64,000 bases of DNA from Octopus sinensis (taxonomy: Eukaryota): the NCBI RefSeq assembly GCF_006345805.1, contig NC_043002.1:84134001-84198000 (forward strand). Direction: 5' to 3'. A program made the position numbers and the translations under genes. Within the stretch, counting starts at the first letter, position 1. Every line of letters begins with the position of its first letter. Of the stretch, positions 31,093 through 55,600 are shown piece by piece. The notes under the pieces were generated by a model. That model ran no database searches. It saw nothing but the letters and a program-made list of their open reading frames with translations, and was not told the origin of the DNA.

Positions 31093-31533
31093 ATTTTAGG
31101 TTGATCAGCATCTTCAATATATTCTACTGGTTCCCTCTGTGGTATTGTGTTATTGGACCATGGTCTAGGTGCAGAGTTTAGATTTGTGTACTCCTCATAC
31201 ATTTTGCATTCTTCACGGGGTTGGCTCATTAGTTTCATTTGGTTTTCCTTTGTTCGCCGGCCCTTTCGACTGGCTTCTTTTGACATGCCAAGAGTCAAAC
31301 ATTTTTGTAGCCTACAGTAGGCACAACGAGTCCTTGTGAACTTATTGATTATGCAATTTTTGCTAATGCACAAATAAACCATTTTCTTGCGTATGCTACG
31401 ACGGAAAAATCCTTTACAGCCTTCACAAATGAAGTGGCCATAATGTATACCAGATGCAAGATCTCCACAAACTTTACACGGAAAGTGACGTGGGTTACAT
31501 AAAAGCTTCTTCTTTTCATAGTTATTTGTGGTG
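31093..31533 (-). CDS. Coding exon 6, canonical NR1/RAR-like DBD14 (31284-31478)
   Basis: Acceptor ttcttttttccttttag|C (phase 2). [75 protein letters not shown]. Ends AAAAT|GTAAGT, which is either a donor or reads through to TAA at 31089. Confidence 0.9.
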
Positions 31534-34500
31534 CTAAAAGGAAAAAAGAAGAAAATAATAAAATTGTTGATACACATAATCATAGAGATAGTTTATTTGT
31601 TTTAATATCTGTTTTTTTTTTTCATGCTATGACTTTGACAGAAATGGATTTGGGAGCAGGATTTAATGGCTGGATGCTCCTCTTGTCACAAACCCTCACC
31701 TGTTATTCAGGAGAAAGGGATTTTTATATTTCACAGGTATTTGAAAGTGTTGAGCCATCAGTCACAATGTCAACAAGACATCAACACTGTTTCATTCAAA
31801 CAGTAAAAATTGAAATATCAACATTCAGGAACATCCACATAGACACACACATACATGTGTGTATATAAATATACACACATAATTTTATGTCAGTTTTCCC
31901 ATGCTAGCATGGGTTAGACAGTCTTTCTGACATTATCTTCATGTTGCCAACACTCAGTACATGATGTACCTATTTTAAAAACAAGGATACATACAGTAAA
32001 TATAGCCATAAAGTATGTTTGTTGAAATTTGATCATAAGAGTAGCAAAAATGAAGATAGTAGCATCAATGTTACTAACAGCATGAACTGGATGCTTTTTT
32101 AAGTGGCACCAGCACTGGCAGGGTCACCAAGTAATTTGCAAGACAAGGAATCTTTGAGTGGGGAAGGGGCATTGGAGGAAGTAATCTTGTATCAGATGAT
32201 GGAAGGTTAGAATGTGACAGAGAGACAGAAACAAAGGTCTTGCAGTAGAGGAGGTGCATGGTTACCCAGCCAGAGAAAGAGAGAGATGCTAAACTCTATA
32301 GATATATTCTGTAGTATTGCATAGTTTAAAGACATTAAAACATCTTACTTCTCTTCTTTCATCATTCCAACAATCAGACACTTCTTGAAACGGCAGTGAT
32401 GACACAATACTCGACTGGTTTTGTTCACAATGCAGTGGTTGTTGTACTTGCACTTGTAACTCTCGCTGTGGTTGTTAGTAATACTGAACTGGAAGAAATT
32501 ACGGCAGCTACGGCAAACCCACAGCCCACAATAAATCTCACTGGACACATCTGAACAAACAATGCAAGGAACTTTTGGATTTTCCTTCACCACATTCTGT
32601 GGATTTTCATCTGAGTTGCTGTAACAAAGAAAGGATAAAATTGTATAAATAGAACATAACATTAATGTGAAAGATATTAAATATGTTTTCTTCCATCCCT
32701 GTTTTTTTTAAGCCCAGTGATGTAAGTTAAATGAGAAATAACTTATACAACTCATACGCATGCCCACACACACACTTTGGGTAAGTGCTTTCTGCTATAG
32801 CATGGGCAGACCAAAGCCTTGAGTGAATTTGGTAGACAGAAACGGAAAGAAGTCCATTGTGTGTGTGTATATCTAGGCATACCTAGAATAATGATGCACT
32901 TTTATCAAATTGACTACTCGCATGAGACATCCCTTTGTATTATAAAAGCGGACTTGTTTATTAATTGAATATTTTTGTTGCACAATCACTGAGATGGTTG
33001 TCATATTTGCTAAAAATACCAGCCACACAGGCCTAGGCCTTAAATCATGCTCCACCAAATTTTTTTTTGTTTTTGGCATAATTGTATGAAGTTCTGTGTG
33101 TAGAATATAAATTTGCAAAAATTTTCTGAAAACTTGAGACAAATAAAAAAGTTATGAAAGGGTTATATGTTGTGCATAATTCTACGCTTCCATATCAAAA
33201 TACAAGTGCTATTTCCAGGATGTTGACAAAATGGGCAGTCACGCACAAAATGACAGCTTTGAAATTGTGTTTCTTGACTGAGTCAAAATGATTAAACTTT
33301 AAACCTCTATAACTTATAAAAACATTTTTCTGGAAGGAGTTGAATCTGATGGGTCCCCTTCAAAAACAGGAAGATACAGAGATTTTTCGTCTCTCCTAAA
33401 GCATAAAATTTCCTACCAGATACTAACTCTTCATTGCCTGGCACACCAGCAGCATTTAATGGCAAACAATATGAATGGTAGACTGAATGATGCGTTACAG
33501 TTAGTTATCAAGACTGTGAACAAATTGAAGTCCAGTCCCTTGTCTGATTGAATTTTCCGTCAATTCTGTCTGAGAAATGATGAAGACTATACTAAACTCT
33601 TATACCATACCAAAGTGTGGTGGCTGTCAAAAGGAAACTGTGTTTTACGCTTTGTTCAACTGTTTCATATAATCATATATTTCTATGAAGATACTACACT
33701 ATCCACTTCATTGATGGGTGCAAGGCGCCATATCTTTTTTCTTTGTGATATATTCTCAAAATTAAATGATTCAAATATGTTATTGCAAGGAAACAGAAAA
33801 ACTCTCGTTGATTGTAAATTATTTACTACTACCTTCATTTCAAAATTGGTGCTGTATAAGATTAACATTCCAAAACATCAATTCCGTCAATTTCCACAAC
33901 TTGACTCTTTGAGAGATGAATTGGTTGATGAGGATTTAACTACATATCACAACTATATACAATCATTGCATGATGACATTTCAAGATATTGCGCTGAATA
34001 TTCCAAATTGGTAGAACAAACCATTTGAGGTCAATGCAGTCAATTGTTCAGGAGGGATTGATAGAATTACAAAATGACAATGATGCCACAATGCGATATC
34101 ACCGTAATGGCAAAGAAGGTTTGTGGTACCAATCTGTGGAAACATATGATATTACTTTTTCTTGCCTTCCTTACCTCATACCGGGTTGAATCTGGTTTTA
34201 GTCATTTGGAACTTTACTTTTCCATAAAAGAATTGAACTGGATGTGACACAACGAAGAGACTTGTGACTAATGTTGACAAGTTTGAAACTGAATGTATCT
34301 GCATTAGCTGCATCATACCAGACACTTTTTAAGAATACATTAAAAAGTTGTATTCGTTTCCTTTATAATACAATCATTAATTATTTTTGCATTGGTAATT
34401 CTGATCAATGGTTCATTTGGGGAAAATAGAAATCAGTGTAAAAGAAAGTGCAAGTTTACCGAAGTTAGTCTGTTTGCATAATATAAATTTAACATTAGAA

Positions 34501-37500
34501 TTTTATTCACACTAGCAGCAAAACTAAGCCCACAATGAGGGATTATTTGTAAACAACAGCATGTTTAGTCCAAACGGCACTAACCAAGCAATGAGTCTAC
34601 AATATAGTGTGTGTGTCAAATGATACAGGGGGGGGGTTCTCCTAGTGTTAGGGGTATGGTTGTATCAGAGTTTTTTTGACATAGGTGGGCAGTGGAGCAA
34701 TTTTGGACCAATAAGTGGGCAATATCGCAATTTGATGCGAAAAGTTTGGGAAACATTGCTTTAATGTCTATTTTCCATGCTGACACTGTCTGGGCCATTC
34801 AACCAGAGCTGGCAAGCAGGAGAGCTGCACTTGGTTCCAGTCTGACTTAGCTTGGTTTCTATGGCTAGATGTCTTTTCTAACACCAATCGCTTTACAGTG
34901 TGTGCTGGATGCTTTTAACGTGGCACTGGTATGAGTACTTTTACATGATGTCAACACGAGTGCTTTTTATGAGGCACTGGCACAGGGCTCTTGCAAGCCA
35001 TGAAAAGTGGATGTTAAAGCAATTAGGATGATGATAAAAGTAGCATAGAAATTTTGAATTATCAATGGAATGGACAAACAAAAAACTTACTTGGTTTTAG
35101 ATTTATTGGTGCTATTAGTCTTTGTCTGCTGCTTCTTTAACTCTGGCATTTCTTTAGACAAATTCTCATCTAGTTTGCGTCGTCTTCCTCGTTTGCTCAA
35201 TTCCTTTGACATGCCAACCCTCAAACACTTTTGGTAGCGACAATAGGAACAATTCACTTGCGCACTACCGTATACATTACAATTTTTCGGGGCACACTGA
35301 TAGTTTTTAAAACTTTGTTGCTCACAACTCTTGTAGAAGAAAACTCGGCAATTGTGACAGGTCCAAACCCCATAATGAATTCCAGATGCTTCATATCCAC
35401 AGACTTTGCAATGGTTCTGTAAAAAGTGATTAATGCCAAAAATATAATATTATTGAAAAAATTACAATTTCTTAGTTTATTAAGTGGTTACTTACAACTC
35501 AAACTTAGTTACATTCAATATCACCAAAGTATCCAGGCAAGAGTGTCCTTATAGCACTTAATACAATTCTTACTAATGTTACAATGAACAATCTCAGGTG
35601 ATCCTACTTGGAAATGTTATAAATGTTATACAGCAGGAGTGGCTGTGTGGTAAGTAGCTTGTTTACCAACCACATGGTTCCGGGTTCAGTCCCACTGCGT
35701 GGCACCTTGGGCAAGTGTCTTCTGCTATAGCCTCGGGCTGACCGAGATTTGGTAGATGGAAACTGAAAGAAGCCTGTCGTATATATGTGTATATATGTGT
35801 GTGCATGTATGTTTGTGTTTGTCCCCCTAGCATTGCTTGACAACCGATGCTGGTGTGTTTACGTCCCCGTTACTTAGCGGTTCAGCAAAAGAGACCGATA
35901 GAATAAGTACTGGGCTTACAAAGAATAAGTCCCGGGGTCGAGTTGCTCGACTAAAGGCGGTGCTCCAGCATGGCCGCAGTCAAATGACTGAAACAAGTAA
36001 GTAAAAAAAAAAAAAATATGAATAACAGAAATTGCAATGAAAAGGTTGTATTTTTTACCTCTAATTCCAATACACAGCACAAATATATAAGAGCTACAAT
36101 AGATAATCTCCCTCAAGCTTAGAGGCTCTTGAAGATAAAGCTTATCTAAATTTTCAAGGTGTTTAAACTGAGTGTATAAGATTGCACCCCTCTGAACTGG
36201 ACATCTGTCTGTTGTAGGGTTAATCCTCAGGTGCCACTGATACTCTTGCTCAGTTGAGTGCTCTGGAGCAATATGAAATGAAGAGCCTTGCTCAAGGATA
36301 CAGTGCACAGCCCAACCCAAGAACCAAACCTCAAACCTAAAGATCACGAGCCTAACATTGTAACAACTGGATCATGTACCTTTATGTCCAAATATATGCG
36401 AATAAAGAGAAAATATACATTACCCTCGTAATGGATTCAATCTGTACATTGCTAGCAGACTCAACCATCTTTTGGCTATCAGTCTTATCTTTTAAAGGCT
36501 GGACATTATGCTTTACAATATTTTTGGCCATTCCAAGAGCAAGACATTTTCGATACCGGCAATAATCACAGCTCTTTTTGTTGTTTTTCGTAATTGAACA
36601 GTTTTTGCTATCACAAGAATATTTCCGGTTGATACTGTTCTTTTGACTTCGTTTAAAGAAAGATCGACAAGGAAAACATGTGAGTACACCTGCATGTACA
36701 GTAGAGGCCTCATCACCACACACTTTACAGAGTATGTTGCCACTATGCCGAGTGAATCCAAGAGACAGGTTGTCCAGGTCACTAGAAATATATAAAAAAA
36801 TAGTCAAGTATATTAAACATAGTAATACAAAAATCTTTTCAACAACAATCAAAATTAGGCATTATAATTAAAAGCATTGCATTTTTATTAACATCTTCAT
36901 GTTGGCTCACAGCTGTATAGTTATCTGTTTTTTTATAATTAGTTTTCATTTTCACCATTTTGTTATTTTAGATTGTGTCTAACTACCCCTAACTCCCAGG
37001 ATATATTTAAGCTATTTGTACCATTTATTTTCTCTCTCTCTCTCTCTTTTCTTTTGAAAGTAGTGGTTTTCTGATTGCAGCCCTCTCATGAAATCTGGCT
37101 TTGTGCAGCTCCCAGCAAACAGTTTTTGTGGAAACTGGGTTCTCGAGGTGGTCATTAAGTTCTGCAGTAATTTTGGGAGCTGTACTTTTGTGATCCTTTC
37201 TAACAAATTGCGTAGAAGTCCAACTGTCCCTATCTGAAAGTTTTGGTTTTCTTTCAGAGTTTTGTTTCGATGAGGAGGTTTTTCTCTCTTTCTCAAAACT
37301 GTCATTTCTTTCGAGACCTCTTCCACACACACATGCTCTCTTATACACATGCACGTGCACCTTCGTTTTGGGATCACCACTACTTTATTAACACCCCTTC
37401 TTCTTAATTCTCCTGTGTGACCTCTCTGGCATTCGCCATGATAGATCGCTAGTTACTACACATTCTTTAATTTCTCTCCTTGTCTCTGTGTTCCATTCTA

Positions 37501-37660: not shown

Positions 37661-40600
37661 ATAATATTAGGGAGTATATCCAAACTTACAGGGAAATATA
37701 TATGTAGGTTTAGGTAGATATGTATATGTTTTCTGCTGGTAACTTTATGTGTGTGTGTGGGTATATACATGTGTATGTATGTATATGTGTATGTATATCT
37801 ATGTGTGTGTGTGTGTATGTATGGATGTATACATATGTATGTATTATGTGTATATATAGGGATGTAGACAGTGATATGCAACCCCATTACAAAACCAATA
37901 AATTGATTGATTGATTGATTATTTAATCAATCAATGGACCTAAATTTTTGAATATATTATATATTTTTTATAATTTAGACCTCAATAAACTAGAGTTGCC
38001 TCCCTTCATTCTTTTTATAAAACCACACATCTTAAATATAACATTGAAAGTAATTAAATGAATAGACGGATAAATATTTTAAAGGACTGAGTAAATGATG
38101 GTTATATTAATTAAGTGACTTAACACTATTACATAGAGTCTTGCATTTGAGGCATTTTGCCAGATAAAAATAGAATTTAAACATAATTTCAGGGATAAAT
38201 AGCAACAATTTAGTAATATGTAGGTATATATATATAAAAGAGAATATATAAGGATATATATTGAGTTGATTAATTAAAAGAGAATATATATTAAGTTGGT
38301 TCATTAATTTACTAACTAAATACTGTTGCAATTAATGCACTCTATCGGAGAATACATTTTAAACATAATTTTAGTGATAAACAACAAATTAGTGAAATAA
38401 CTTATATGGTCACTTTTGTTATTTTGTCCCTTATTTGAATTTGGTCCAAATAACTTCCAACATACATTTTTAACCATATATCACCCATATGATTTAATAA
38501 ATATATAAATGATGTCCCTACAGAATTCATGTTTTTCATCCAAATGATTTTGAAGACTGCGGAATAAATGATAATCTGGTGGGGTAATATCTGAAGAATA
38601 TAGTGGGTGGAGCATCGCTTCCCATTCAAACTACTCTAGCCTTAGTCTGGCATCCCATTCAATGAGGAGCCTTATACTCCCAGTCTTAGAAATTATAAGT
38701 TTTAAACAAAAGACAAGATTCATCCCAAACAGGTATGAAAATATTTAAGATGTTAGAAGACTATTACTTACCCATCAGACACAAGACTTTTATTCTGATT
38801 TGAAATTGGTTGGGTATTGTTTCCACTGTTGCTGTTCTTAGAATTTTGATTAACAGCATCTTGATTAGGAGTTGATAACAGTGACTGTGGCACTTCTGCT
38901 TGATCACTTGACTTTTCTTTCTGATGACGTAGTTTACGCTTAACCTTGTAGGACATACCAACACCCACGCATTTCTGGAACCAGCAGTAATAACAGCGAC
39001 TACGACTGGTACGACTGATTAAACAATCCTTGTTGAGGCATTTATATGCACGATGTAGTCTTTTGTCCAAACTGCGTCGGAAAAAGACACTGCAGTTCAA
39101 ACAAGATGCAATGCCATAATGAGAAACAAACGAGACATCCCCACAGACTTTACATAACTTAGCAACATCCTTGCTTAGATTAGTAGTCACTGATGGTGAT
39201 TCATTTGTTGTGTTCCTCATGTTGGAACTTAGGTCTTTGGTCTGAGATACTGTAGGACAAGTGGAACCCGATTTGCTTGATGTAACAGGCAGCATTTGTA
39301 CTTCTGAAGATGTGGTCATAGATAATCCTGAAAGCTTGTTAATAATCTCTGAATTATTACTAGGAGTTGGTATAGGATTAGTTTTGTCACAAACGTTGGA
39401 ACTGTTGGCATTGCAATCCTGTTCAGGTGCTGAGAGTCTGTTTGTAGCCATTAATGTTTGCTGCTTTTTCATTTGTAGAGTATCACTCATCCCAACAGAA
39501 AGACATTTTTGGTACCAGCAGAATCGACACCGGTTGGTAGTAGCTTTATTAATAAAACAGTTACCGTCTGCATGATCCTTTTCAGTAGGTATTCTCCCAT
39601 TTAGTACAGTTCGAAAGAAACACAAACAATTACGACATGTCTGTACTCCATACCGAACACCAATTGCAGTATCATCACAAACACTGCATATCAGTTCAGA
39701 ATGAGTTTGTGTCTGTCCCTGAGGTAAGGTAGGCTTAGGAGCAACTAACACAGATTTTACAGGTGAAGTGTGAAGTCTACTTTGAACAGCATCTACAGTG
39801 TTTGTAGGTTGTTTATTATTTGATAACTGTGGCTGCAAAGAAACTGTATTAGGTGTGCTGGTAGTATTAGTGTTTGCATTGGTCTGTAATGGTGTTGTGG
39901 TAATTACTGATACAGTTTGACTTCTAGGATTAAATGTACTAACTGTGCTGACTTCTCTTTCAACAGGAGAAACACTGCAAGCAACATCTGTAGTTGTACA
40001 AGTTGCACCAGAAACTATGCTGTTTGTGCTACTGATGGAAGTTGCTACAGATGCAAGGGATGTGCTTGCTACTTTACTTCTTTCAGCATTTGAAGAATCT
40101 GCAACAGTAGGCAATAGCTTACCACTCTTTACCTGGTGGATTCCTGAAGAGACAGATCGGTCAGTATTTGAAGTATAGCTCTCCAAGAATTGACCAGTTC
40201 CACTTTGGCTTTGATTTGTGGGAATTAACATTTTTGACATGCCAACAAGCAAGCACTTTTGAAACCAACAATAAGAACAACGTTCGTAGTTATCAGGTGT
40301 GACACAACAGTTTTTGTTATGGCACTTATATTTTTTGGTCGTTCGTGAGTCAGTACTCTGCTTAAAGAAAATAGTACATGACCAGCAGGTTTCTATGCCA
40401 AAGTGAATTCCTGATGCCAAGTCACCGCATACTTTACAGAAACATTCTTGACTGCTAGTAGAGTTTGGATTCTGGGAATTACCGACATCACTTTTGTTGT
40501 TATCACTCTGGTGTGGAACACTTTCAATAATTAAAGGTGAATCAGAATCATTATCAACAGCCATTGGTTCGGTTTCAGTGAGATTAGCTGTCCCAGTGCT

Positions 40601-43600
40601 ATTTAAATTACTATCTAAATCAATGCAAACAATAGATGATTGCTCACTGACTATCTTCTCTGTACTTGTCTCACGTAGCATCTTCTCTTGAGAAACGGAA
40701 GATCTGTTAGTGACTTTTTCTAAGTTCATTTCATTAGATTCTTCATCAACTGATATTCCAGTCTGTGTTGAACTGGAAGGCTTTGCTTTCAGATTTACTT
40801 CATCATCATCATTGTTTTCATCATTGTTCCCTTCTTTAATAACATCAGATGATATATCAATGCTATCAACTTGATCATCTTCAGTATTGGTGTCATTGTC
40901 AGTCATGACTGGATCACTATTGTTCACAGTGCTTTCATTATTTTGAATTGACTCTTTATGAAGTGCTGAAACTGCTGCTTCTGAACTTGTCTCAATCTGA
41001 TCTTCAGGAATAGAAACCTCATTTTCACTAGTCAAATCCTTCTGTTTGCTAACAGTTTCAGTTTCATTAGTTTGGGGTCTAAGTTTTGGTGGCCGTCCTC
41101 GTTTAGTGGTGCCTTTCATCATTCCTGCCTGTAGACACTTCTGTAGCCAACAATATCGACAGAATCGGCGTGTTACACTGTTGATTATGCATGACTTATT
41201 ACATACTTCATATTTACAGCCAATTTTGGAGTCAGTGCTTTGTGCAAAGAAACTACGGCAGCTTGAACATGAAATAATACCATAATGTAATCCATGAGAC
41301 ACATCTCCACAAACACTACACAAGCTAGTCCCAATGAAAATAGTATCAGTTTTGTTTCCAACTCTGCTTTCAGTCATGCTACTATCTTCTTTATTTCTGA
41401 CTTTATTTCTCTCGCTGAATTCTGCGACTATAGTAACAGAAGGGACAGACGAAATTTCAGTGGTGCTCTCTGACACAGTAGATGGTTGTTTACTGTTTTC
41501 TTTACAGATAGAATCTTGCTTACAGGTTGGTGTAACTTCAGTGCTAAGTAGTGTTGATTTTATCTTTCGTGGACGGCCTCGTTTACGCAGTGGCTTGGCT
41601 TGTGCTGTTTCCAAATCTACATCCTTATTTCTTAGGGGGATTTTCAAAGTAGTTTTGGTAAGAGTAGAAATAGACTTTGAAGTATTGTTCTGGGGATGAC
41701 GATTTTGTTTATGCATAGAAGTTGATGTCAAATTCTTTTTCAATGAAGTCTTTGAATTTACTTTTTGCTTGGCCATTTTCTTAGACAATTTCACAGTACT
41801 ATATGTTTTCTGTGATTTAGGCAAAGAATGTCGTAAACGACCATCATCATCATCATCATTAAGATTATCATCAACAAACTCATATTCTTTCAGTGCAGCT
41901 TGATGTGATGAGCTAGGAAGTGCACTTTTTGAAAGTGAAGGCTTTTTCTTAGCCTTCCCAATCATTTGAACTGACTTTTTGATTCGACTATGCATTTGAT
42001 TTGCAATATGTTTTGGAGAACAACATTTAATCATATAACGTAAAGAAAGAGATGGTACACCAACAGCTCTGCTTGTCTTCTTCTTTGACATATGAGCTGT
42101 TCTTTTCAGCAAAGTGAAAGATGTTTTCTCAGTTAGAGCTCGTGACCTGTGAGAAATATTTGGGTTGGTTGTCATCCTGGTGTAGTCAGTTCCAGCTTCT
42201 TTAGGATGGTTACTATCTGAAACAGAATCTTCATTATCAGAATTTCCAGCAAATTCAGAACTGGTCTCAGAAGGGTCTGGCACTACTATAGGATTAAGAG
42301 ACTGTTTATCGATGAAATGAGACAGTGCTCCAGGAATGATTTCTTTGCCAACAGGAGCCTCAGGTGAACAACAGTTGGAGTTTTGGATCATATCAACCAA
42401 AACTGAAGAATTTACAGAATTTCTTGAAGAACTTGGAATAATTTCTGTAATAACAGATTTATCAGTAAAATTTCGCAATGTCTCTAGAATAGTATTGTCC
42501 ACATTTTCCTCAGAATGTATTGCTCCAGTTGAATCAATAATTTCTACAGGTGTCACTCTATCAGCACTGCTTTCACCATCATCAACAGAATCACCAGACT
42601 TCTTTTGAACAATTTCAGTGTCTACAGAATTCCATAAAGGTTCAGGAATAACTTCAGTAACTACAGAGGGATCCACTGATGTACTAAGGCTTTCAGGTAA
42701 GATTCTCCGGAATGTTGGTGCTTCTTGTAATCCCAAACCCTGGTCAGACTCTGGCAAAGAAGTTTTTGCATTTGCAACTGGAATTTCAGTTGTGATATCA
42801 TTTGATGCCACTAGAGGAATGCTTTCAGAATTTGAATTCAAAGTAGTGCTTTTATCCATGTTGCTGACATACAGAAGAGAACCATCACTTTGGTCTTTTC
42901 TCTCCATTGTTACAGTAACATCTTCATTACATAAACTAGTATCCATGGCAGTGGACATAGATGAGTTATTGGAATCACAGCTAGGTTTTTGAGAAGGAAA
43001 CGACTCACTGATATCAACAGAGCATCCAGAATCACTAATTTGATTGTTATTATCTACAAATTCTGTATTTGAAGATTCTGGGGCCAAAGAAGATGTTGTG
43101 GTTGTTGGTTCACCTGAAGATGGCTGCGAAATTTTCAAATCCAAAAATGCTCTTGAACAGTTTTTATTACTTTTGGACACTGACTTGAAATCAGGAACAT
43201 CACAAACCTCCACATTTCCAATCTCTTCATGTATTTCTTCACTCATTTCATCAGTAAGGTCTTTAGCTAAAGGACTTTTATCATTAGGGAATACATTCTG
43301 AATAATTCCCATTTCATTTTCATTAATATGATGGTGATCACTATTGTCGTGGAACTTTTCATTTCTGTTTTGATCCTGTTGACCAGTTTTGGGAGTAGGT
43401 GTTGGTGATTGAACTGGAACGATTCGTTTCTCTTGCTTTGACATTCCAACAGCCAAACATTTTTGGTACCAGCAATATCTACAAACACCTCTATTTATTT
43501 TGTCAACATAACAGTTGCCATCTCGGCAGACATACTGACTGGAAATTTGCTTGTCTAAACTCTGGCGGAAGAAGACACTACATTTCAGACATGTCCACAC

Positions 43601-46600
43601 TCCATAGAGGACTCCTGGAGCTCTGTCTCCACATACTCTACATAACTTCTCAGAATCTGTTTCTTCAGAATGAGTAGCAGTTACAACAGAGCTACCATCC
43701 TCAATCATAGCAAAATCATTTGTTTCTGACTGTTTCTGTTTGACAAAATCAATATTTGAAGATTCCAATACAAGCTGTGGTTCAGGTTCTAGTTGTGGCA
43801 TTTTAGCATCCAAAGACAATGCATTTGAAGATTCCAGAGACTTATCACAAATTTTGACTCCTCGCTTCCTTTCTTTCTGAAGACTAAGAAGTTTTTTCCG
43901 TTCTTTCTCAATGCTTCTCTGGAGCATTAGAAGCTTCTCTTCCACATTATCTTTCTTCATTTGAAGCTCATTTAATTTTTGCTGAGCAGTTTCCCGCTCT
44001 CCATGCTCAAAATTACATCTGTCCATATCAGAGACTTTTTCTGACACATCCTGATCTTCACTTCGATCTAGGATTGGTTTGAAAACCACTTTTTTCACCT
44101 GTTTTTCTCCAGCTGCTGATGACACAAATGGCAGAGATTCAGAAACTGGTGTCATATCATCTGAGCTGTCGAAAATGTTCTGTGGAACTTCATTAGTTAC
44201 TTTTACCATCAAATGATCATTCATCGAAATTGAAGTAAAACTGTCTTTCACAGAATTGTTACGTTTTTCATTAGACTTTGTTTCCCAATCCAAACTAAAA
44301 AGCGATGGATCACGATTTTGATTTGAGTGCTCGGAGATGGAATCAATTCTGGTATTTTTAGAAGTCAAACAGGAGGGTAGAACATTACTGGTTTCATTGG
44401 TTTGTTTCAGATGACTGTCTTTTAGTAATAAACCACTTTCCTTTGTTTGATAATCATTACTGTTAAGGAGTACACGCCTAGTAGCTTTTGACGTACAGTC
44501 TTTCATTGTATCAGGTAACATCACAGACTGCTGCTGTTGCTGGTTTTGTTTCTTTAAAGCACTAACACGTTCTTTTTCCATTTTTAGACGTTCAAATTTC
44601 TTCTGGATCAATTCTATTTCTTCAGATGATTTAGTTAGAGATTCAAACATACTTTCCATCAAACTTGGTAGTTCACAAATTTGGTTGTCTGAAGTATTGT
44701 CCCCAAAGTATGGTTCAAGAACTTCACTGTCCATGTGAGATGGACTTGTTTTATCTTGAAGTATATTGTCCAAAACAGCACTGTATATGTCCACTGATTC
44801 TCTGAAAACTAGATTATCCAAAACAGGATCAGGAATTCGATTTTTTGATGCCTGGGTCTCCAAACTGGACGAATTTCTCAAAACATTTGTTTCTTTACTG
44901 AGCAAACCACATTCTACACACTTCTCATACCAACAATAGCTGCACCGATTTTTTGGCAGCAAATCACTATTGATAATAGAACAGCTTTGAGTCTGCTCAC
45001 ATACATACTTAGAGCATATTTTTGAATCAGCATTTTCTTTGCAGAAGGCCTTACAATCAGTACAAACTTTAGCACCACAATAGATCTCAGCAAAAGGTGC
45101 ACTACAGACAATGCACAATTCTTCGTTTTGAATGAGTGGAGTTATCACTGAAGAATATAGTGTATTTCCAGGATTTTTAACTTGATCCAAAGAGCTAACC
45201 ATGTGTACAGATGTTGTATTTGTGCTTGTAGAGTTACTGATGGCAGTTGTTAATTGTGCAGATGATATTGGTGTTAGAGGTAAGGAAAATGTAAAACGAT
45301 CACAGGTTGGCGTCAAGGCAAAAGTAAAACGGTCACAAGTCGGGGTCATTTTTGATATTTGGTCAGCCTGCATTCCAACAGCAAGGCATTTCTTGTACCA
45401 ACAAAATTCACAGTTTTCCCGGTTTGTTTTTGTAACCGAGCAATTTCGTCGTTTTGAACAGCTGAAACCAGCAGCAAAACCATCTTGTATGCACATCTGG
45501 AAAAAGATGCGGCAATCTGGACAAGTAAGCACTCCGTAATTAACAACAGAAGCCTGATCACCACACACAGTACAGATGTTCATATTTTGTGTAAAATGAG
45601 AAGGATCGATAAAAGTCTTGGTGGTGTTGTTAGTAGTAGTAGTAGTAGTAGAAGTAACAGTAGTAGTAGTAGTTCTACATGTACTGCTCTCAGTAGATTT
45701 CAACAAGTCCTCGTGCTTACATTTGTCAGATGTGGCACCTGAATCAGTCAATTTGGTACTATTCACTGCATTTACATCAGGTGCTTTATCGCAGGAGCCG
45801 ATAGCTGTTGAAATAGTAGATTTCTTCAGTCTGCTGCTGTTACTGTTTAAACCAGTATTACTACTACTATTACTAATGTTACCGTTATCATTTCTGCTAG
45901 GAATACTGACGTTGGTATTTTTTGCAAAATCTTCTTTTGGTGCTACAACTCTTTCATGAGTTGGTAATTTACACATTTTGTAATGTGATTCAGCACCAGA
46001 AGCAATCTTGATGCCATCTTTGTTACTGTCTGTGACTTTCTTTTTAGGTAGCACCACAATTTTCTTTGCCACTGTTTTTTGATGAACTTTTGCTGTCATA
46101 GTAGTGGGTGCTGAAAATGTGACTGTTGTTGATGCTGCAGTTCTCTTTAAAACTGATGGCAATGTCACAGCATTGGTCGGTTTCTGTGATACAAAAGTTG
46201 ATGACGACGACGACGATGATGATGATGACGGCAATGATGATAAAGTCGATGATGATGATAGAATTGATGATGGTGATGAGGAGGAGGATAAAACAGATGA
46301 TGATGACAATGATGGTGAGGTTAATGATGATGATGATGACTGTGATGATAATGATAATGAACGAGAAAATGAAACAGAAAGAGATTGGAATGAAGTAGTT
46401 GATGATGAGACAGAAGTATTACTGGTACTCCTTTTTGAAGATGAGTTAAGTTGTGTATTTGAAGAGTTACCAGTATTCTGTGTGCTACTTGCAGAATGAC
46501 TTACCACTTTGAAACGTTTGTTAGGGATGCTGTTAATGTCGCTCTGATGTTCAGAAGGTTTGGCTAGGTTTTGATCTATAGTTTCGAGTTTTCTTTTTTT

Positions 46601-49600
46601 CACAGTAATCACATTAGTTTTTGATGCTGTTGAAGAGACACATCTACCGCTGCTACTGTTGTTGTTATCGTTTAGAGATTTATTACCAATATTGTTGTTG
46701 CTACTGTTTAGAAGTTTGCTACTAACATTGTTGTTGTTCTTGTTGCTACCGATGACCTTCACACAGTCTTTGCTATCTTTGATACACTTTTTGTTATTGT
46801 TTGCTGTTACAGATCCTTCGCTTTCTTTCTGCTCATCTTTTACTTTAATGCCATAAACAAGTTTTACCGTTTTTTGTGTTGATGAAACAACTTTGCAGCT
46901 GTCATTATCTTCCATTGGATTTCCCTCTTTCTCTTTCTGCATACCGCTAAGCAGACACTTTTCATACCAACAATACTCACAGCTACTTCGCCGAAAACGA
47001 TTAATCTTGCATTTTTTAAACTTGCAAAAATAGCCCTTGTAAAAATCATCAAGAATACTCATTTTAAAGAAAACTTCACATTCTGGACAGGCCAAAATGC
47101 CATAATGTTTCTTGAAAGCACGATCTCCACAAACTTTACATAAGTTGAGATCTTTTTTAGGTGGTGGTACTTTCTGAGACTCTGTAGTTTGTTGTGGGAC
47201 TGTGGCCTTGCATGTCTCTTTATTTATATGTTTATGCAGTGATGGCATTTTCGATAATGAGTTGGTTGCTTTTTCAGTTTTCATTTGCTGTTGTTGTTTG
47301 TTCTCTACTTTTATCACAGTAACAGTTTCACCAATTTCTGGTTTATCACTTGTCATTCCAGCTCTGCAACATTTCTGGTACCAACAGTACTCACACTTTC
47401 CTCGGTTTCTCTTGGTAATTTCATGCCCTTTATGTTTGCAGTGGTAACCATCAGCAAAGCTGTCTTGTATGCTCAGTCGATAGAAAAGCACACAGTCTGG
47501 GCAAGTGAGTACTCCATAATGGATAGTAGAAGCTGTATCTCCACATACTTGACACACACATTCCTCGGTAGTCAGGACAATGCCAGGATGTTTCTCGGGA
47601 TGTGTTTTCCTGCAACATAAATAGAAATGAATTAAGTAAAAATTAACTGAATGCCAACATTGAAATAATACAGATAGACACATCCTCATCATCCGTTTAG
47701 CATTTACTTTTTTAAGCTTGCATAGGTTGGACAGAGTTTATTGAGGAAGATTTTCTATAGTAAGATGCTCTTCTTGTCACCAACTCTCAGCTGTTTCCAA
47801 GCAAGGCAATATTTCCTCATAGCCACACATGTTCTCATAGAATATTGGAAGTGAATACCACTGCTTGTATGACAGTGGCAGTCATTTACAACTATCACAT
47901 ACACATAAATATACATACATACATATATACACACACACATCTATATATATACATATATATATACACATACACACACATCTATATATATATATACACATAC
48001 ATAGACACACACACACACACATATATATATATACATATACTACACACATATGCAATGGGCTTCTTTTACTTTTCTCTCTCACAAGGGCTTTGGTCATCCT
48101 GAGGCTATAACAGAAGACACTTGTCCGAGGTACCACACAGTGGGACTGAACCCAGAGCCATATGGTCAGGAAGCAAACTTTTTACCACACACAAATATAT
48201 CTGTTTACTATATGTACTAGTGCAATTACTAGAGTCACTGGCTTAGCCTTTCATGACCAAAGATAGCTATCAATAGGTTGCTAGCCTAATTAACATTTTT
48301 GTAACGAAGAAATAATGGTAGTAATAAGCATCTCTCTCTCTCTCGCAAGAAATGCAGTAAAGCAACTATAATTTGAGATCAAAGTTTCAATGGCAGACTA
48401 GGTTACTTTGTAAGTCTCTCACTCACTCACTCTCAATCCTACTATATGACACTTTAGGCAAATGTTTTAAATCATATTCTCAAGTTAGCCAATATCTTTT
48501 AAGTGGGAATTGATAAGTGGAAACTGAGCAGAAGCCCATTATATATGTAGAAGAGGATTATACTTATTGGTAAAATCAAGCAGGAAGTCTGAATCAGACT
48601 GGAGTTTGGTGCAGCCTTCCAGGTTGCCAGTCCTGGTCAAACCATCCAACCCATGCCAGCATGGACAACAGATGATGATGATAATGATGGCTAGAAATGT
48701 GTCAAAAAAGTACCTTAAGCAGTCAGTAAATGCATAAAAATAAAATAAGCACCAGATTATTATAAACATTCAGATCGTTGTCAGCGTCACCTCACAGGTA
48801 CTTGTGCCGGTGACACATGAACAAAACAGCCGAGCGGAGTCGTTGCCAGTGCTGCTGGACTGACTCTTGTGCAGGTGGCATGTAAAAAACACCATTTTCG
48901 AGCGTGGCCACTGCCAGTACTGCCAGACTGGCCCTCATTCTGGTGGCACTTTAAAAGCACCCACTACACTCTCGGAGTGGTTGGCATTAGGAAGGGCATC
49001 CAGCTGTAGAAACTCTACCAGATCAGATTGGAGCCTGGTGCAGCCATCTGGTTCGCCAGTCCTCAGTCAAATCGTCCAACCCATGCTAGCATGGAAAGTG
49101 GACGTTAAACGATGATGATGATGATGATGATATGGGGAGTACTGCAGCATAGCTATGCTCCAAGGACTAAAACCAATCAAAGTATAAAAGAATATATTTA
49201 CAACTACTTTCCTGTAGTAACATGCACTGAATAGGTTCATTTTAAAACAGCCAGTTTCTACTCAGTCTTTCATCGTTTCTGTGTGAGGCACAGCATTCTG
49301 AGATCAGTTCTCACCATGTCTTCCTTCCTCTCCTGTGGACTCCTTCCACCAGCACTTGTTTGACACTTTTTCACCCAACATGCATTCTTCATATGCATCA
49401 CTCATCTGTACTATCAGTGAGGTCCACACCTCTAATGCTGAACTTTTATAGCTCAGCACAGCTCGTGTCATATCATTCGTCCATACCAATATCACACATC
49501 TAGCTATCAAAGATATAATATATATATCATCATCATCGTTTAACATCCATTTTCCATGCTGGCATGGGTTGGACGGTTCAACCGGGGTCTGGGAAGCCAG

Positions 49601-52600
49601 GAGGCTGCACCAGGCTCCAGTCTGATCTGGCAGTATTTCTACAGCTGGATGCCCTTCCTAACGCTAACCACTCCGTGAGTGTAGTGGGTGCTTTTTACAT
49701 GCCACCAGCACAGGTGCCAGGGGAAGCTGGCAGCAGCCACGATTGGTTGGTGCTTTTAACGTGCCACCAGTACGGAAGCCAGTCAAGGCGGCGCTGGCAT
49801 CGGCCACGTTAGGATGGTGATTTTTACATGCCACCAGCACAGGTATCACAACTACAACTTCCATTTGATATTTATTTTGATGTTGATGTACTTGACTCAA
49901 TAGGTCTCCTCAAGCACAGCCGGTTACCCTATGATCCTAGGTAAGCACAGCAGGTCGTTAAGCAGTCCAAGGTACTTTGGATGGGCTGGGGCTGCTATGT
50001 GAAACTGGTGCAGGAAACAGACACGAACTCACGTTATTTGTCGTGTCTTTGCAGTCACAGCATATCTCCTGAGATCTCGGTCTTTCATCATTGCTTCCGT
50101 GAGGCCTATATATATCTGAGTGGTTAAGAAATTCACTTTGTACCCACACAGTTTCAGGTTTAGTTCCACTGCATAATACCTTGCGCCAGTGTCATCTGCT
50201 ATAGCACAAAACCAACTAAAGCCTTTTAAGAGGATTTAGTAAGCAGAAACTGACAGAAGCCCAATGTGTGTATGCACGTGTGTGTGTGTGTGTGTGTGTG
50301 TTCATGTGCCTTTGTTTTGACATTGGGTACTGACTGTTAACAAATATTGCTGTCATACAAGTGGTGTCATTTTCAATCTTCCATAAAAACATGTCTTGTA
50401 TTAAGGGAAAATATTACCCTGCTTTGGAAACAGGTGAAGTTTGGCAACCGGAAAAGCATTCACCCATAGAAAAATATGCCAAAACTAATTCTGTCTGAGT
50501 CATCCAGGCATGGAAAAGTTAACATGATGATGATGATATGTATGTGTGTGTGAATAGACCTAGATAAGATGCTGTCTGGTTTCATGCCTGGAAGCAGTAT
50601 CATAGATGCAATCTTCCTAGTGAGGAAACTGCAGGAGAAATACTTGGCAAAATGTAAACCATTATTCTGGAGAAGGCATTTGACAAGGTAACACATACCT
50701 TGCGATCACTAAGGAAACTAGGTGCTGACAAACAGCTTGTAAGAGGTGTATAAGTTGTGTACAAAGATATAGTAAATAAGAGTTAAGAACAACTTCAATG
50801 AGGAATTTAGAGTGAAAGTTGAAGTTCATCAAAGTCCAGTCCTCAGTCCCCTCCAATTCATCATCGTCCTACAGGTCATTACAGAGGAGTTTAAGACTGG
50901 CTGTCCATAGGAACTCCTATATGCTGATCATCTAGCTCTTGTAGCTGAATCTATGGGGAATAGAGAGGAAATTCCAAGCATGAAAGCTAAAACCTGATTG
51001 GCTCTGATGAAGATTTATTCAAAGGTGTAGTAGAGGGCATTTACCAGATGTCTTATAGAATATATGCAATAAACTGAACTCCTCTAAAAGTACCAAATGG
51101 CTATTATTTCATACGTAGAAGTTTACTATTAAAGTGCATATGTGCAGCATTTTAATATTGAGGTGTATGTATACTATTTTAAAGTTGAGGTGTGTGTATA
51201 CAATAATTTCAGTGTTGCAGTGTGTGTGTGTACGATATTTTAGTGTGCCATTTTAGTGTTGAGGTGTGAATTCTTTAATTCATTTTGTCTTCATCATTCA
51301 ACTACAAATATGCTGGAGTACTGCCTTGAAGGACTTTAGTCAGTCAAATCAACCTTACTTTCTTAAAGCTTGATACTCATTCTATAAGTCATTTTTGCTA
51401 AAGTTACAAGGATGTAAACAAACTGATGCTGGTTGTAAATTGTAAAGTAATGAGACAAACACAAAGACACACACACACATATATACTAAAGGCTCCTAAA
51501 TATGTTCCATTTACTGAATTCACTCACACAACATCATTGGGAGCCCCACCCCCACCCCACCCCCAGGTGGGGGGGGGCTCCAAAAGGGGGTCTCAAGGAG
51601 TAGCATCCCTGCCTTCCCAAGCTAGTTTTCTACCACATTCTTTAAAGATCGTGCTAGAGGCCTTGGTCTTGGCACCACTCATGTCTAGAAACTGAGGCTG
51701 GAGGTAAGCAAGGACATGCACCCTGTAGAAATTCCAGTTCCAAAAATGCCTCATAACAATAGCAAAGAAGCATGGGCACCAGCCAGCCCAACGGTTGGGG
51801 CAGGCTGCACCTGCCTACCTCCAAAAGGAAGGTGCAAATGCTCATCCTGGGTCACACAAGCATGACTTACCTTATGATGGCTGACAGCTTGAGGAGAAGC
51901 TTGGGGTCAGGTTGGGAAGTTGGAATGTGGGCAGTCTGCATGGAAGGGGAACTGAGGTGTATGAAGAATTGAGGAAGTGGAGGGCAGATGTGTGCTGTAT
52001 GCAGGAGGCTAGGTGGAGAGACCAGGATGCAAAGTAAGATGATACGAGTTCTGGTGGTCAGGAAATGGCAAGGGGACTGGAGGCATGGAAGTTTTGGTGA
52101 AGGAAGAAATCTGAGAAAGTGGTGGAGGTCAGGAGAAAGAGTGACAGATTGATGACAGTAGGATTAGCATTTGAGGAAGAAGTGGTGAGGTATGATCCAC
52201 AAAGTGGAAGATGGATCGCTGAGAAAGAGTGGTTCTTTGATGACATGGTGTGTGAGCGGGACTTACATGAGATAGATGAATTGGTTTATGGCATGTGTGA
52301 TTTTAATGGATATGTTGGGAAATGGATCCAAGGCTTTGAGGGAGAAATGGAATTGGTGAGAGAAATATGGAAGGAAGGATGCTGTTGGAGTTTTGTGATA
52401 AGAAGGAGTTGTGTGTGACAAACGCGTGGTTTACAAAACAGAGAAAAGGAAGGTGACTTTCAGTGCAGGAGGGAATGAGACAGAGATTGATTTCATGTTG
52501 GTTGGCATAGAAAACAAAAAGTATCTGAGAGATGTGAAGACAATACCAGGGGAGTTGCAGCACAGGTTGGGGTTGCTGACTTGACTAAGAGGAAAGTTTT

Positions 52601-55600
52601 AAAAATGTGTGAGAAAGGAAACGGTTGAGAGAAGAAAGGTGTGGAGATTGAAGGAAGAAGAAACAAGAGCAAGGTTTGAAGAGAGAGTTAGGGAGCTGGT
52701 AAGCATTGATGCACTGGATTTGTGGAAATCTTTTAAGGAAGGGGTACTGAAGACATGTGACAAAGTGTGTGGAAGGACAAAAAGTAGGAGAGATCGGTGA
52801 GATATGTGGTGGTGGAATGAGGAAGTGAGGGATGCGATAGCAAGGAAGGAGGTGCACAAAGCTTTATGTAATAATAGGACTGAGCAAATGAAAGCCAAGT
52901 ATAATAACATGAAGAAGCGTGCAAAGAGGGTGGTTGTGAGATCTATGAGGAAGGAGGCTGAGGAGAAGTTGAGCAGGCTGGATGAGAACCCAGATAGAGT
53001 GTGTAGGTTTATGAAATCAATGAAAAAAGATGGAAGAGATGTTAAAGGAGGAAGGTTCTCCTTGAAGATGAAAGGAAGCGTTTATCGGAGTTGTGTGAAA
53101 TCTGCAATGCTGTATGGGAGTGGGACATGGTGTCTGAGGGAAAGCAAAATGGCAATTTTGTGAAGGACCAAGAGAGCAATGTGTGGTGTGAAACTACTGG
53201 ACAGAAGGAGGGCTGAGGACTTGATGGAGATGCTGGGATTTGGAGGAATTGGTGGAACAGCTGGCAAGGGCGAATGGAATGCAGTGGTATGGACATGCAT
53301 TGAGGAGGGATAAGGATCATGTTCTGAAGAGCGTGCTTGAGTTTAAAGTGAATGAACTGCGAACGCAAGGTCGACCAAAGGAAACATTGAGGGAACAGAT
53401 GGAGGAGATTGAGAGGAATGACTTGAAGAGGGAGGATGACCAAAACCAGGTGAGATGGCATGATGGTGTGAGAGCGGTTGCAGTAGGAGTGAGGTAGATC
53501 CAACCACCCACATTAACAGGGACAGACCTGGATTTAAAATATTGGAATTCATCATCATCAACATCAGTGTGCCACACAAATGGGAATGATATAGAAACTA
53601 TGTAAGATGGAAACTTAACCAAACAGCCATGCCTGTGCTTCTTAAGTGTATGGGTCCCATTTTATTGTTAAGATGTGTATATAACCTTAACAAAATATGT
53701 TAATGTTGAAGTGTGTATGTGCAGCATATGTTGAGGTGGTGCAAGCAGTATTTCATTAATGAGTATACACAAGCTGCAGACATTTTACAGTTGAGATTTG
53801 CATGCAGGGCATTTTAATGTTAAGGTGTTTCATTTGTTCAATGAGTGTTTTTCCATGCAAGCATGGGTTGAGCAGGGGCTTATTTGAGACAGAGTTTTAT
53901 GGCCAGATGCTCTTCCCGGTCACCAAACCATACCTGTTTTTCTCAAGTAAGAGAATTCTTGATTTCTCCTCATCTTCAAAAGTGTAGAGTGACTGGTTTA
54001 TGATGTCAACAAGGAATGTAAACATCATATCACCATTTCACTCAGACAGTAACAAGTGACATCATAGAATGTCACTATTCATGTGCATATGCACACATAC
54101 ACACACATATACAAGAAGCTGTCATCAATTTCCATCTATCAAATTTACTGAAAACGCATAGGTGGCACAGAACTATGGTAGACAACAGTTGCCCAAGATG
54201 CTATGTAGTGGGACTGAACCTGAAACCACACAACCTATTGCTGAGATATTTGCATGCTGTATTGTAGACATGTACACATGTGGCACTTTAGATTTAGGTC
54301 TAATGCTATGACATCTGTTTGCAATTTAAGAATAATTTAAAAAGTTAGTATCACCTAGCAGATTAGAGACCATTTTCAGCTAAAATTATTTAATGCTGGT
54401 GGTACAAGAAAAAGCACTCAGTACAAGTGAATGGCATTAGGAAGGGTACCTGGCTATAGAAACCATGTCAAAGCAGACACTGGAGCATGATGCAGTCCTT
54501 GGACCCATTGGATCCTGTTAAACTGTCTAACACATACCAGCATGGAACATGGACATTAAGTGGCGGTGATGGAAGTCAGAAAAATTGTTTAGTTTTATTT
54601 CAGAAATGAAAGGGAGAAAATGAATTGATGTTTTGATAACTCTCTCCAAATCATGTCCCAATATAATTTTGTTTAGCATTTTTATAGATGCATGGCACAA
54701 AGTATCAGATCAAATTGTGCTGTGCTTTCAGTTTGGTGCTACACTGTAGGTCACCTGCACTTTTTGATTGTGTGATAGATTAAACAGCTTGCATCCAATG
54801 ATGTGGTGACTGCAACTTACTTATGCATGTAGTTACTGCAGCTAAAACGAAGTAAACTTAAATGATAAAAACAGCTCCAAATTTGCCTGATTTATCATAA
54901 AAATTTGATAATCTAGCTTATAAAAGGTAGGGCTGAGAGAGAGAGAGAGGGGGGGGAGAGGAGAGAGAGAGAAAATGGATGTTTTCTTTTCCTTTTAGTG
55001 ACTTTAATAACTAAGAAACTACTTCAAGAATTTTTTGGTAAATCATATCAAATCTAACATCTATTTCATCCTGGCATTATTTTATTCACCAGCCTCGTCT
55101 GGCCTCCATGCCAGTGGCACGTAAAAAGCACCATCCGATTGTGGCCGTTGCCAGCCTCATCTGGCACCTGTGCCGGTGGCACATAAAAAGCACCCACTAC
55201 ACTCACGGAGTGGTTGGCGTTAGGAAGGGCATCCAACTGTAGAAACACTACCAGATCAGACTGGGCCTGGTGCAGCCTTCTGGCTTCCCAGACCCCAGTT
55301 GAACCGTCCAACCCATGCTAGCATGGAAAGCGGACGTTAAACGATGATGATGAATCAAATAGATAAGCTACATTTTGAGGAGCATAGAACAATACACTAA
55401 TTTACACAAATGCACACACATATATCATCATCATTTAACATCTGTCTTCCATGCTGGCTGGGTTGGACAGTGTGACAGAAGCTGGCAAGCAACACCAGGC
55501 TCCACTGTCTGCTTTGACATGGTTTCTATGGCTGGATGCCCTTCCTAATGCCAACCATAAATAATAGGTACAGGCATGCCTGTGAGGATGCAGAGTTTGC

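Follow-up and report, generated by a model that had tools for sequence, protein, structure and literature searches.

A conserved cephalopod gene with fourteen nuclear-receptor-type DNA-binding domains, nine of them in one giant exon, and no ligand-binding domain

Introduction

Nuclear receptors (NRs) are, by the textbook, proteins of one DNA-binding domain (DBD) and one ligand-binding domain (LBD), the known exception being NR7, whose members have two DBDs. The NR0A proteins (Drosophila knirps, knrl and eagle, and C. elegans ODR-7) possess an NR-type DBD without an LBD and are ligand-independent. The roles of the P-box, of the GR R489-type contact and of the minor-groove contacts made by the A-box/C-terminal extension are those established in the NR structural literature. 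Here we describe LOC115213281 of Octopus sinensis, a conserved cephalopod gene whose product carries 14 NR-type DBDs and no LBD, nine of the DBDs lying in its giant second coding exon; the window, that is, the whole stretch analysed, comprises 64,000 nt of contig NC_043002.1 (assembly GCF_006345805.1), and the gene is on its minus strand. The octopus protein has in common with NR0A a DBD component without an LBD, from which it differs in that NR0A proteins are small and have a single DBD and no array.

Among described proteins, the 2DBD nuclear receptors (2DBD-NRs, NR7) combine two DBDs with an LBD and are known in molluscs (PMC10497141, PMC1810520), their P-P modules reading EACKK-EGCKG (A) or LPCKS-EGCKK (B) (PMC10497141). 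The octopus protein, whose domains we number D0 to D13, resembles them in bearing several zf-C4 DBDs on one polypeptide, and its last DBD has EGCKG followed by FFRRS, as has the second DBD of NR7A. It differs in having 14 DBDs rather than two and in lacking an LBD; moreover, its upstream DBDs contain neither EACKK nor LPCKS, the nearest being FPCRS in D10, and only the EGCKG of D13 fits. Membership of NR7 was accordingly rejected on DBD number, P-P module and LBD, and a typical nuclear receptor was ruled out by the missing LBD. The 2023 review of 2DBD-NRs (PMC10497141) is silent on cephalopods and on proteins with three or more DBDs, and full-text literature searches found no description of LOC115213281; while the sequence is public and automatically annotated, its architecture appears to be undescribed.

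We searched 1.84 billion representative proteins with a profile of 13 DBDs. At the top stood orthologue fragments of LOC115213281 itself (O. bimaculoides, Argonauta and a cephalopod contig from ENA), followed by predicted proteins with three to six DBDs (Caenorhabditis brenneri, a stick insect, a mite and eukaryotic contigs) and then by ordinary 2DBD-NRs, the typical members of which scored well below the orthologue fragments. The C. brenneri (CAL2035663.1, CAL2034588.1, CAL2034589.1), stick insect (XP_063216918.1) and mite (RWS01804.1) proteins share with the octopus one the possession of more than two zf-C4 domains per predicted protein, but they have only three to six DBDs with short linkers, several with an LBD-like C-terminus; they are uncharacterised predictions and none is orthologous. 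A further match, in 11 partial stretches, seems to be an artefact of repeats.

Another point of comparison is offered by the poly-C2H2 zinc-finger (KRAB-ZNF-like) arrays, which are expanded in octopus (Albertin 2015, cited in PMC5291267). The likeness lies in many tandem DNA-binding zinc modules within one large exon, individual recognition residues and repeat-rich surroundings, whereas the octopus domains are double treble-clef NR DBDs of about 70 aa, their linkers extend over hundreds of residues as against the seven-residue TGEKP, and one conserved gene, not a family of genes, encodes the array.

The Gene and Its Giant Exon

An earlier note on this DNA, made from its letters, had placed an exon of 2,946 stop-free codons at 38772-47609, and spliced threading of XP_029638073.2 through the window reproduced it exactly (47609..38772, 8838 nt, from phase 2 to phase 2). 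In the ORF listing of the window, the corresponding minus-strand open reading frame (ORF) spans 38768..47692 and amounts to 2974 aa counted from the first ATG. Both splice sites are consensus, the acceptor being tttatgttgcag/GAAAAC after a polypyrimidine tract and the donor TGATGG/gtaagtaa (slashes mark junctions), and the stop that terminates the ORF is the TAA within the GTAAGT donor. With about 37% GC, about 7% of random codons would be stops, and the calculated probability of 2946 stop-free codons is about e^-200; chance is thereby excluded. Outside the exons of the gene, the longest ORF of the window has 153 aa, and the seven longest non-exon ORFs gave no Pfam match.

The exon is coding exon 2 of LOC115213281, the product of which, XP_029638073.2, is a 4182-aa "uncharacterized protein" whose main exons match the window at 100% or 99.97% identity. 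Its protein cluster further contains CAI9724068.1 (O. vulgaris, 4009 aa), CAI9724069.1 (a second O. vulgaris isoform, 3526 aa) and two short selenocysteine lyases (SCLY) of O. bimaculoides. Seven coding exons of the model lie within the window, and every intron is GT-AG:

57458..58509, minus strand: coding exon 1, with the start ATG and the degenerate DBD D0, which has long loop insertions (threading, Pfam)
38772..47609, minus strand: giant coding exon 2, with DBDs D1-D9 and long linkers (ORF, splice sites, threading, nine Pfam zf-C4 matches)
36424..36781, minus strand: exon 3, with D10, P-box FPCRS and canonical CRYRKC (six-frame pattern scan, threading)
35091..35416, minus strand: exon 4, with D11 (six-frame pattern scan, threading)
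32349..32618, minus strand: exon 5, with D12, reading CIVCS...EIYCG as in D4 (six-frame pattern scan, threading)
31093..31533, minus strand: exon 6, with the RAR-like D13, the sole canonical DBD, and no stop ahead of its phase-2 donor (pattern scan, similarity search, threading)
577..701, minus strand: first SCLY exon common to the fusion model and the stand-alone SCLY, with a phase-2 acceptor (threading)

Pfam recognised zf-C4 fourteen times in the 4182-aa model (728 bits), together with one class-V aminotransferase domain; one DBD, degenerate, belongs to exon 1, nine belong to the giant exon and four sit in single small exons. The LBD family PF00104 had no match at E<=1 in this model, and 12 LBDs used as tblastn queries returned only E>0.1 from the window and from the O. 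vulgaris (L001) and Argonauta (L003) loci. Typical NR genes carry an intron between the two zinc fingers. In the threaded model no intron splits any of the 14 DBDs, which agrees with what the earlier note had stated.

The acceptors of exons 2, 3, 5 and 6 and of the first SCLY exon are all of phase 2, and exons 2, 5 and 6 singly, as well as exons 3 and 4 jointly, are phase-symmetric units; hence any subset could be skipped in frame and the locus is modular. We also observed that this phase-2 pattern fits the insertion of modules into a phase-2 intron.

The DNA-Binding Domains

Within the giant exon, Pfam zf-C4 (PF00105) covered nine stretches with 464.9 bits against a cutoff of 21.1, the ORF translation repeating the unit CxxCGD...C..C..FF...C....C.........C..CW.QKC. 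A six-frame pattern scan returned the nine exon DBDs and four more downstream on the same strand, at 36729, 35410, 32566 and 31478. The domains of the exon are as follows:

47351..47554, minus strand: D1, P-box PDCVL, sixth ligand His (pattern scan, alignment, AlphaFold2 model)
46937..47140, minus strand: D2, P-box PECEV (pattern scan, alignment, orthologues)
45371..45574, minus strand: D3, P-box PDCRI (pattern scan, alignment, tree)
44903..45115, minus strand: D4, P-box TDCKA, divergent (CIVCS...EIYCG), with a three-residue insertion in finger II (alignment, Argonauta and ENA orthologues)
43439..43642, minus strand: D5, P-box LKCSV (alignment, orthologues)
41117..41320, minus strand: D6, P-box SSCRS, followed by KRGRPPK, an element of AT-hook or C-terminal-extension-like Gly-Arg type (translation, alignment, orthologues)
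40235..40438, minus strand: D7, P-box WSCTI (alignment, orthologues)
39485..39688, minus strand: D8, P-box RNCLC, fifth ligand His (alignment, orthologues)
38951..39154, minus strand: D9, P-box LNCSV, followed by FFRRS (alignment, orthologues, structure matches)

Across an alignment of the 13 compact DBDs, the ligand columns C1, C4, C18, C21, C54 and C57 are invariant. Finger I keeps C-x2-C-x13-C-x2-C exactly in 9/9 exon DBDs, and finger II reads C-x3-5-C-x9-C-x2-C (x12 in D4), with the fifth Cys displaced by one residue in D6. The sole ligand substitutions are Cys to His, at the sixth ligand of D1 and at the fifth of D8 (...KDHADGNC...); the zinc-ligand pattern had indeed been described beforehand as kept in all nine domains apart from two such swaps, and the alignment bears this out. 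All of these domains genuinely belong to the zf-C4 fold family. For D1, the one domain modelled and one of the two with a His ligand, an AlphaFold2 model reached a mean predicted local distance difference test (pLDDT) of 92.2, and Foldseek superposed it on the DBDs of TR-beta, EcR, ERR-gamma, GR and RXR with TM scores of 0.85-0.93 (0.93 for TR-beta) and a root-mean-square deviation of about 1 A, so D1 is predicted to adopt the NR-DBD fold. The nearest solved structures to D9 are the Rev-erb and RXR DBDs, with Rev-erb best (E=9e-18).

The recognition surfaces have departed from the canon. A canonical P-box (E/G-G/A-C-K-G/A/S, then FF-K/R-R) together with an Arg after the eighth Cys is absent from D1-D9 and present in D13 only. 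In the exon DBDs, C-x2-C-W[YFL] replaces the canonical C-x2-C-R; D0-D9 all have the Trp, D10-D13 keep C-x2-C-R in Octopus, and the FF-K/R-R pair is intact in D9, D10 and D13 alone. From D1 to D12 the P-box differs from domain to domain, and most P-boxes are kept between orthologues, for example LKCSV (D5), LNCSV or LSCSV (D9), PECEV (D2) and RSCR (D12). To judge from their sequences, such conserved non-canonical recognition helices argue for specific functions unlike classical half-site reading.

D13, with its P-box EGCKG followed by FFRRS, shares about 69% of its residues with RAR DBDs (E=2e-30), including the stretch ...SI.K.MVY.C..KNCIINK.TR.RC.YCRLQKC..GMSKEA.R. Its C-terminal extension is comparable to GMSKEAVRNDR of RAR and to GMSKDAVKFGRM of the ROR-type matches, and the 'GR' at GM+8/9 agrees with the ROR/RAR-type extension in P0210 and 6fx0. 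From the RAR and other NR1 DBDs of known structure (6fx0, 1dsz, 1hra; ROR-gamma 7xvn) the octopus protein differs in that no LBD follows D13 and that the nine exon DBDs are far more derived.

Conservation and Selection

Three loci served for comparison, from O. vulgaris (L001), an ENA cephalopod contig (L002) and Argonauta hians (L003), and the giant frame is open in all four independent assemblies. Over the 10 kb that precede the annotated gene, Argonauta has one open frame; its 3288 codons continue as far as the fetched locus reaches and are orthologous to D4-D9 with the accompanying linkers. L002 has 642 + 2851 open codons with a single frame change in a His/Ser microsatellite, and contains D1, D2, one extra degenerate DBD and D3-D9. 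An assembly error, a true frameshift or a short intron might each account for this frame change, which falls at about 11736..11845, in a CAT/CGT (His/Ser/Arg) microsatellite. The His of D1 is kept in the ENA orthologue, and that of D8 in the Argonauta and ENA species.

Between O. sinensis and O. vulgaris, the exon shows 43 substitutions (0.49%), of which 23 are nonsynonymous and 20 synonymous (NG86 omega, that is dN/dS, 0.31; binomial P=2e-4 against neutrality), and only 2 of the 43 fall within the 615 DBD codons (Fisher P=0.007). Its three indels (3, 6 and 6 nt) are all multiples of 3. In O. bimaculoides, the fragment XP_014778860.1 is 88% identical overall, D1 and D2 being 100% identical and the linkers differing. 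The deeper comparisons, with nonsynonymous (dN) and synonymous (dS) rates computed separately for DBDs and linkers, are these:

Octopus and Argonauta: dN 0.16 in DBDs and 0.34 in linkers; dS 1.4 and 1.0; omega 0.12 and 0.34; amino acid identity 72% and 48-52%
Octopus and L002 (dS saturated): dN 0.26 in DBDs and 0.81 in linkers; amino acid identity 66% and 27-32%

By these rates the array is under purifying selection, strongest on the DBDs, and the same sequence comparisons show that it already existed before Octopus, Argonauta and a third, more distant cephalopod parted. Without selection, a frame of 8.8 kb could not have remained open over such distances. The earlier note had spoken of strong purifying selection and a probably functional gene, and had proposed dN/dS of DBDs against linkers as a measure; the omega values, the frame open in four assemblies and the in-frame indels support it on both counts.

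The linkers, too, contain islands kept in all three lineages, namely two coiled-coil-like blocks, three copies of [VI]x[TK]E[VI]IP, RYMIKxCSPKHI and AT-hook-like RKRGRP(P/R)K, with the KRGRPPK directly after D6 among them. The three [VI]x[TK]E[VI]IP copies lie at about 42270..42750 of the window on the minus strand (P0003, aa 1969-2130) and do not vary between Octopus, Argonauta and the ENA species; the region has no Pfam match. Other parts of the linkers are of low complexity and expand freely; Octopus has a Ser tract, L002 one rich in Glu, Lys and Arg, and Argonauta TDVAS repeats. The L002 tract (EEEKRKEKER-type, about 14000..16000) runs to roughly 600 aa in frame between D5 and D6, and Argonauta has about 60 TDVAS-type pentapeptide repeats in frame after D9 (L003, about 8900..9800). 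Just after D3, at 45282..45348 on the minus strand, a coding 33-nt tandem duplication (2.0 copies, 82% match) was also seen, which the O. vulgaris protein has as well.

Within the Ser-rich tract of the octopus exon, the sequence further suggests that the exon may not always be uninterrupted in the mRNA:

46184..46504, minus strand: candidate exitron, a cryptic intron of 321 nt that keeps the frame, within low-complexity sequence rich in Ser (donor G/GTAAGT, acceptor CAG/)

This candidate is removed in the O. vulgaris model and kept in the O. sinensis model, and the O. bimaculoides model leaves the window sequence at the same point (KRFK/).

Proposed Function and Alternative Explanations

We consider the product to be probably a ligand-independent nuclear nucleic-acid-binding factor, resembling a poly-zinc-finger protein that is built of NR DBDs. 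D13, through its EGCKG P-box and its NR1-type Gly-Arg C-terminal extension, would anchor the protein on AGGTCA-type half-sites, and the nine exon DBDs, with recognition helices of their own and the invariant Trp (C-x2-C-W) in the place of the phosphate-contacting Arg, would add different contacts; in this way the molecule might read long composite sites or bridge several sites. The conserved AT-hook-like RGRP motifs would assist in DNA binding, and the coiled-coil-like linker blocks in oligomerisation. In-frame exon skipping would yield isoforms with fewer DBDs, and one annotated isoform is predicted to run on in frame into selenocysteine lyase. That the nine exon DBDs bind double-stranded DNA (dsDNA) is our assumption, made from their sequence. 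Several observations tell against such a function: D1-D12 are without the canonical base-contacting Glu/Lys/Arg set and D0-D9 without the conserved phosphate-contacting Arg, the full-length 4182-aa product is a gene model, and the neighbour-joining tree of the domains carries no support values. The evidence of selection has a caveat of its own: at the very short distance between O. sinensis and O. vulgaris, the exon as a whole is not less diverged than the neighbouring introns (0.63% and 0.46%), and the selection signal sits in the ratio of nonsynonymous to synonymous changes and in the deep comparisons rather than in overall divergence.

The main rival takes the missing contacts at face value: the derived DBDs would no longer read dsDNA, and the array would be a zinc-module scaffold for proteins, RNA or single-stranded nucleic acid. 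The invariant Trp with its aromatic neighbour (CW[YF]) would then be a stacking or interaction surface, and only D13, perhaps with D9-D11, would touch DNA. For a scaffold speak the non-canonical P-boxes of D1-D12, the Trp for Arg after the eighth Cys in D0-D9 of all species, the confinement of the intact FF-K/R-R pair to three domains, and the long conserved linker motifs such as the threefold [VI]x[TK]E[VI]IP, which suggest partner binding. On the other hand, the NR-DBD fold and the zinc ligands are strictly kept, the AT-hook-like motifs and the NR1-type C-terminal extension point to DNA, and the recognition helix of each domain is kept between species, as specific recognition predicts; we hold both the scaffold and its Trp-based surface to be serious but unlikely. 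It may also be asked whether the exon is used whole at all, or whether exitrons and the skipping of phase-2 exons lead to shorter isoforms, the protein with nine or 14 DBDs being minor or confined to models. The consensus cryptic intron (46504..46184), which the O. vulgaris model removes, the second O. vulgaris isoform, which ends after D11, the phase-2 acceptors and an O. vulgaris annotation informed by Iso-Seq and RNA-seq (PMC10700109) all lean that way. Nevertheless, the whole frame including the linkers is open with an omega of about 0.3 over deep divergence, which requires translation of nearly all of it in at least some isoform, and a single cryptic intron candidate was found and no more, so we regard this explanation as rather improbable.

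Still harder to entertain is the idea of a relic ORF, decaying or neutral, or of tandem NR genes wrongly joined in assembly or annotation. The sinensis-vulgaris divergence of the exon, not below that of the flanking introns, and a RefSeq product without a name would be compatible with it. However, four independent assemblies, with dS of at least 1 between them, all have the frame open, nonsynonymous changes are significantly fewer than neutrality allows, indels come in multiples of 3 only, the zinc ligands are conserved, and the frame is single, continuous and bounded by consensus splice sites, which leaves this idea scarcely credible.

The Junction with Selenocysteine Lyase

The gene models of O. 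sinensis, O. vulgaris and Argonauta hians (GAB1611135.1) all join the D13 exon to the first aminotransferase exon, which lies 30 kb downstream in Octopus and 20 kb downstream in Argonauta, and the class-V aminotransferase family PF00266 matches the fusion model with E=3e-44. We treat the fusion of the array with SCLY as a candidate, an annotated and model-based isoform that is in frame. In its favour, the D13 exon has no stop ahead of its donor in either Octopus or Argonauta, its last residues (VEY.EDADQPK) are conserved, both genera keep the frame across the junction of exon 6 with SCLY exon 2, and the 20-30 kb intron after D13, compared between Octopus and Argonauta, holds shared repeat families only and no collinear conserved island. 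Against the fusion as the only product stands a start exon that belongs to SCLY itself:

13706..13782, minus strand: SCLY's own first coding exon (MGSVLNIAAFDPDSRDVDDIIQNGK), ending in phase 2 (the O. bimaculoides SCLY maps here; Argonauta counterpart at L003 31272..31348)

This exon (MGSVLN...) is annotated in O. bimaculoides and has its Argonauta counterpart in the same phase; in addition, a cephalopod-like stand-alone SCLY of 426 aa (P0160, starting MGGITSK) is encoded on a 2958-nt Logan contig. A search for proteins spanning the D13-SCLY junction returned only stand-alone SCLY and ordinary NRs, but it missed the octopus protein itself too, so that this absence carries no weight. Read-through of each phase-2 GTAAG donor meets an immediate stop, and intronic polyadenylation would consequently give DBD-only proteins; a DBD-only isoform, the one ending after D11, is annotated in O. 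vulgaris. The annotated O. vulgaris isoforms are plausible, coming as they do from a pipeline that used Iso-Seq and RNA-seq (PMC10700109). In the gene models, SCLY's own start exon and the D13 exon figure as alternative partners of the same phase-2 SCLY acceptor. The SCLY starts MGS(V/I)LN (Octopus, Argonauta) and MGGITS (Logan contig) resemble an N-myristoylation start (Met-Gly...Ser/Asn at position 6).

Taken further, and only tentatively, the gene might be a giant regulator specific to the coleoid lineage and the first 'poly-NR-finger' protein, with 14 NR DBDs, each with a different recognition surface, and no LBD, whose main isoform would be fused to the pyridoxal phosphate (PLP)-dependent selenocysteine lyase and would tether the enzyme, or its fold, to chromatin. 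The fusion could go back to a capture of the SCLY exon 2 acceptor by phase-2 DBD exons, SCLY keeping an internal promoter and its own start exon. Should the in-frame link to selenocysteine lyase be real, an enzyme and a transcription factor would be fused in an unusual way. Fourteen conserved NR DBDs without an LBD show that the NR DBD fold is usable as a repeatable module, like C2H2 fingers. The locus supplies 13 naturally diversified recognition helices on one scaffold, and with them a natural experiment in how NR DBD specificity evolves away from AGGTCA/AGAACA half-sites. The gene is also a candidate regulator specific to cephalopods, a clade noted for novelties of transcription factors and genome architecture.

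Duplication History and Repeats

The DBD copies are 30-55% identical in amino acids, and self-BLASTN found no similarity between the units at the DNA level, so their amplification is ancient. As to retro-copying, one of the two routes named in the earlier note, neither a poly-A relic nor a target-site duplication should be expected to have outlasted such an age. In a neighbour-joining tree without support values, the exon DBDs form two groups of their own, D1-D3 and D5-D9, plus D4, with D1-D9 standing apart, D12 beside the first DBDs of 2DBD-NRs and D13 among NR1 DBDs and second DBDs, and every DBD pairs with its positional orthologue. The extra DBD between D2 and D3 in L002 means that copy number has changed at least once.

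Interspersed repeats, as detected by self-BLASTN, make up 20.5% of the window, in 32 intervals of about 100-400 bp, each recurring 3-13 times. They cover 24% of the intron upstream of the giant exon, 27% of the 30-kb intron, 32% of the sequence upstream of exon 1 and 14% of 31533-36384, as against 0% of the giant exon; the short intron immediately downstream of it also has 0%. The non-exon DNA, approximately 52 kb, holds 32 intervals; at that density an 8.8-kb stretch should contain about 5, and the calculated Poisson probability of none is about 0.005. Two further claims of the earlier note are supported here, that of amplification inside the gene by the exon DBDs' own groups in the tree, and that of repeat-rich flanks around an exon free of such insertions by these repeat contents. 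The transposon classes that it named are borne out in part, the flanks holding one decayed long interspersed nuclear element (LINE) and many repeats of the size of short interspersed nuclear elements (SINEs).

The SINE-sized families, with up to 13 copies in the window, are exemplified by 7380..7741, 15149..15535, 17661..17937 and 26603..27013; a tRNA scan for tRNA-derived SINE heads found none. Some of the families also occur in the Argonauta intron (L003, about 34025..34150), and their presence in both genera marks them as old. The LINE lies antisense to the gene:

51900..53500, plus strand: decayed LINE fragment with a remnant of an apurinic endonuclease (APE)-type endonuclease, in the intron upstream of the giant exon (Exo_endo_phos)

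Its Exo_endo_phos match (E=2.8e-5, 24.4 bits) falls just below the cutoff of 24.5. The remnant reads GSWNVGSL...CMQEARW and is accompanied by a C-terminal segment resembling the tail of a reverse transcriptase, most of which has apparently been deleted; a peak of GC skew (+0.5 to +0.65) at 52-53.5 kb corresponds to this element.

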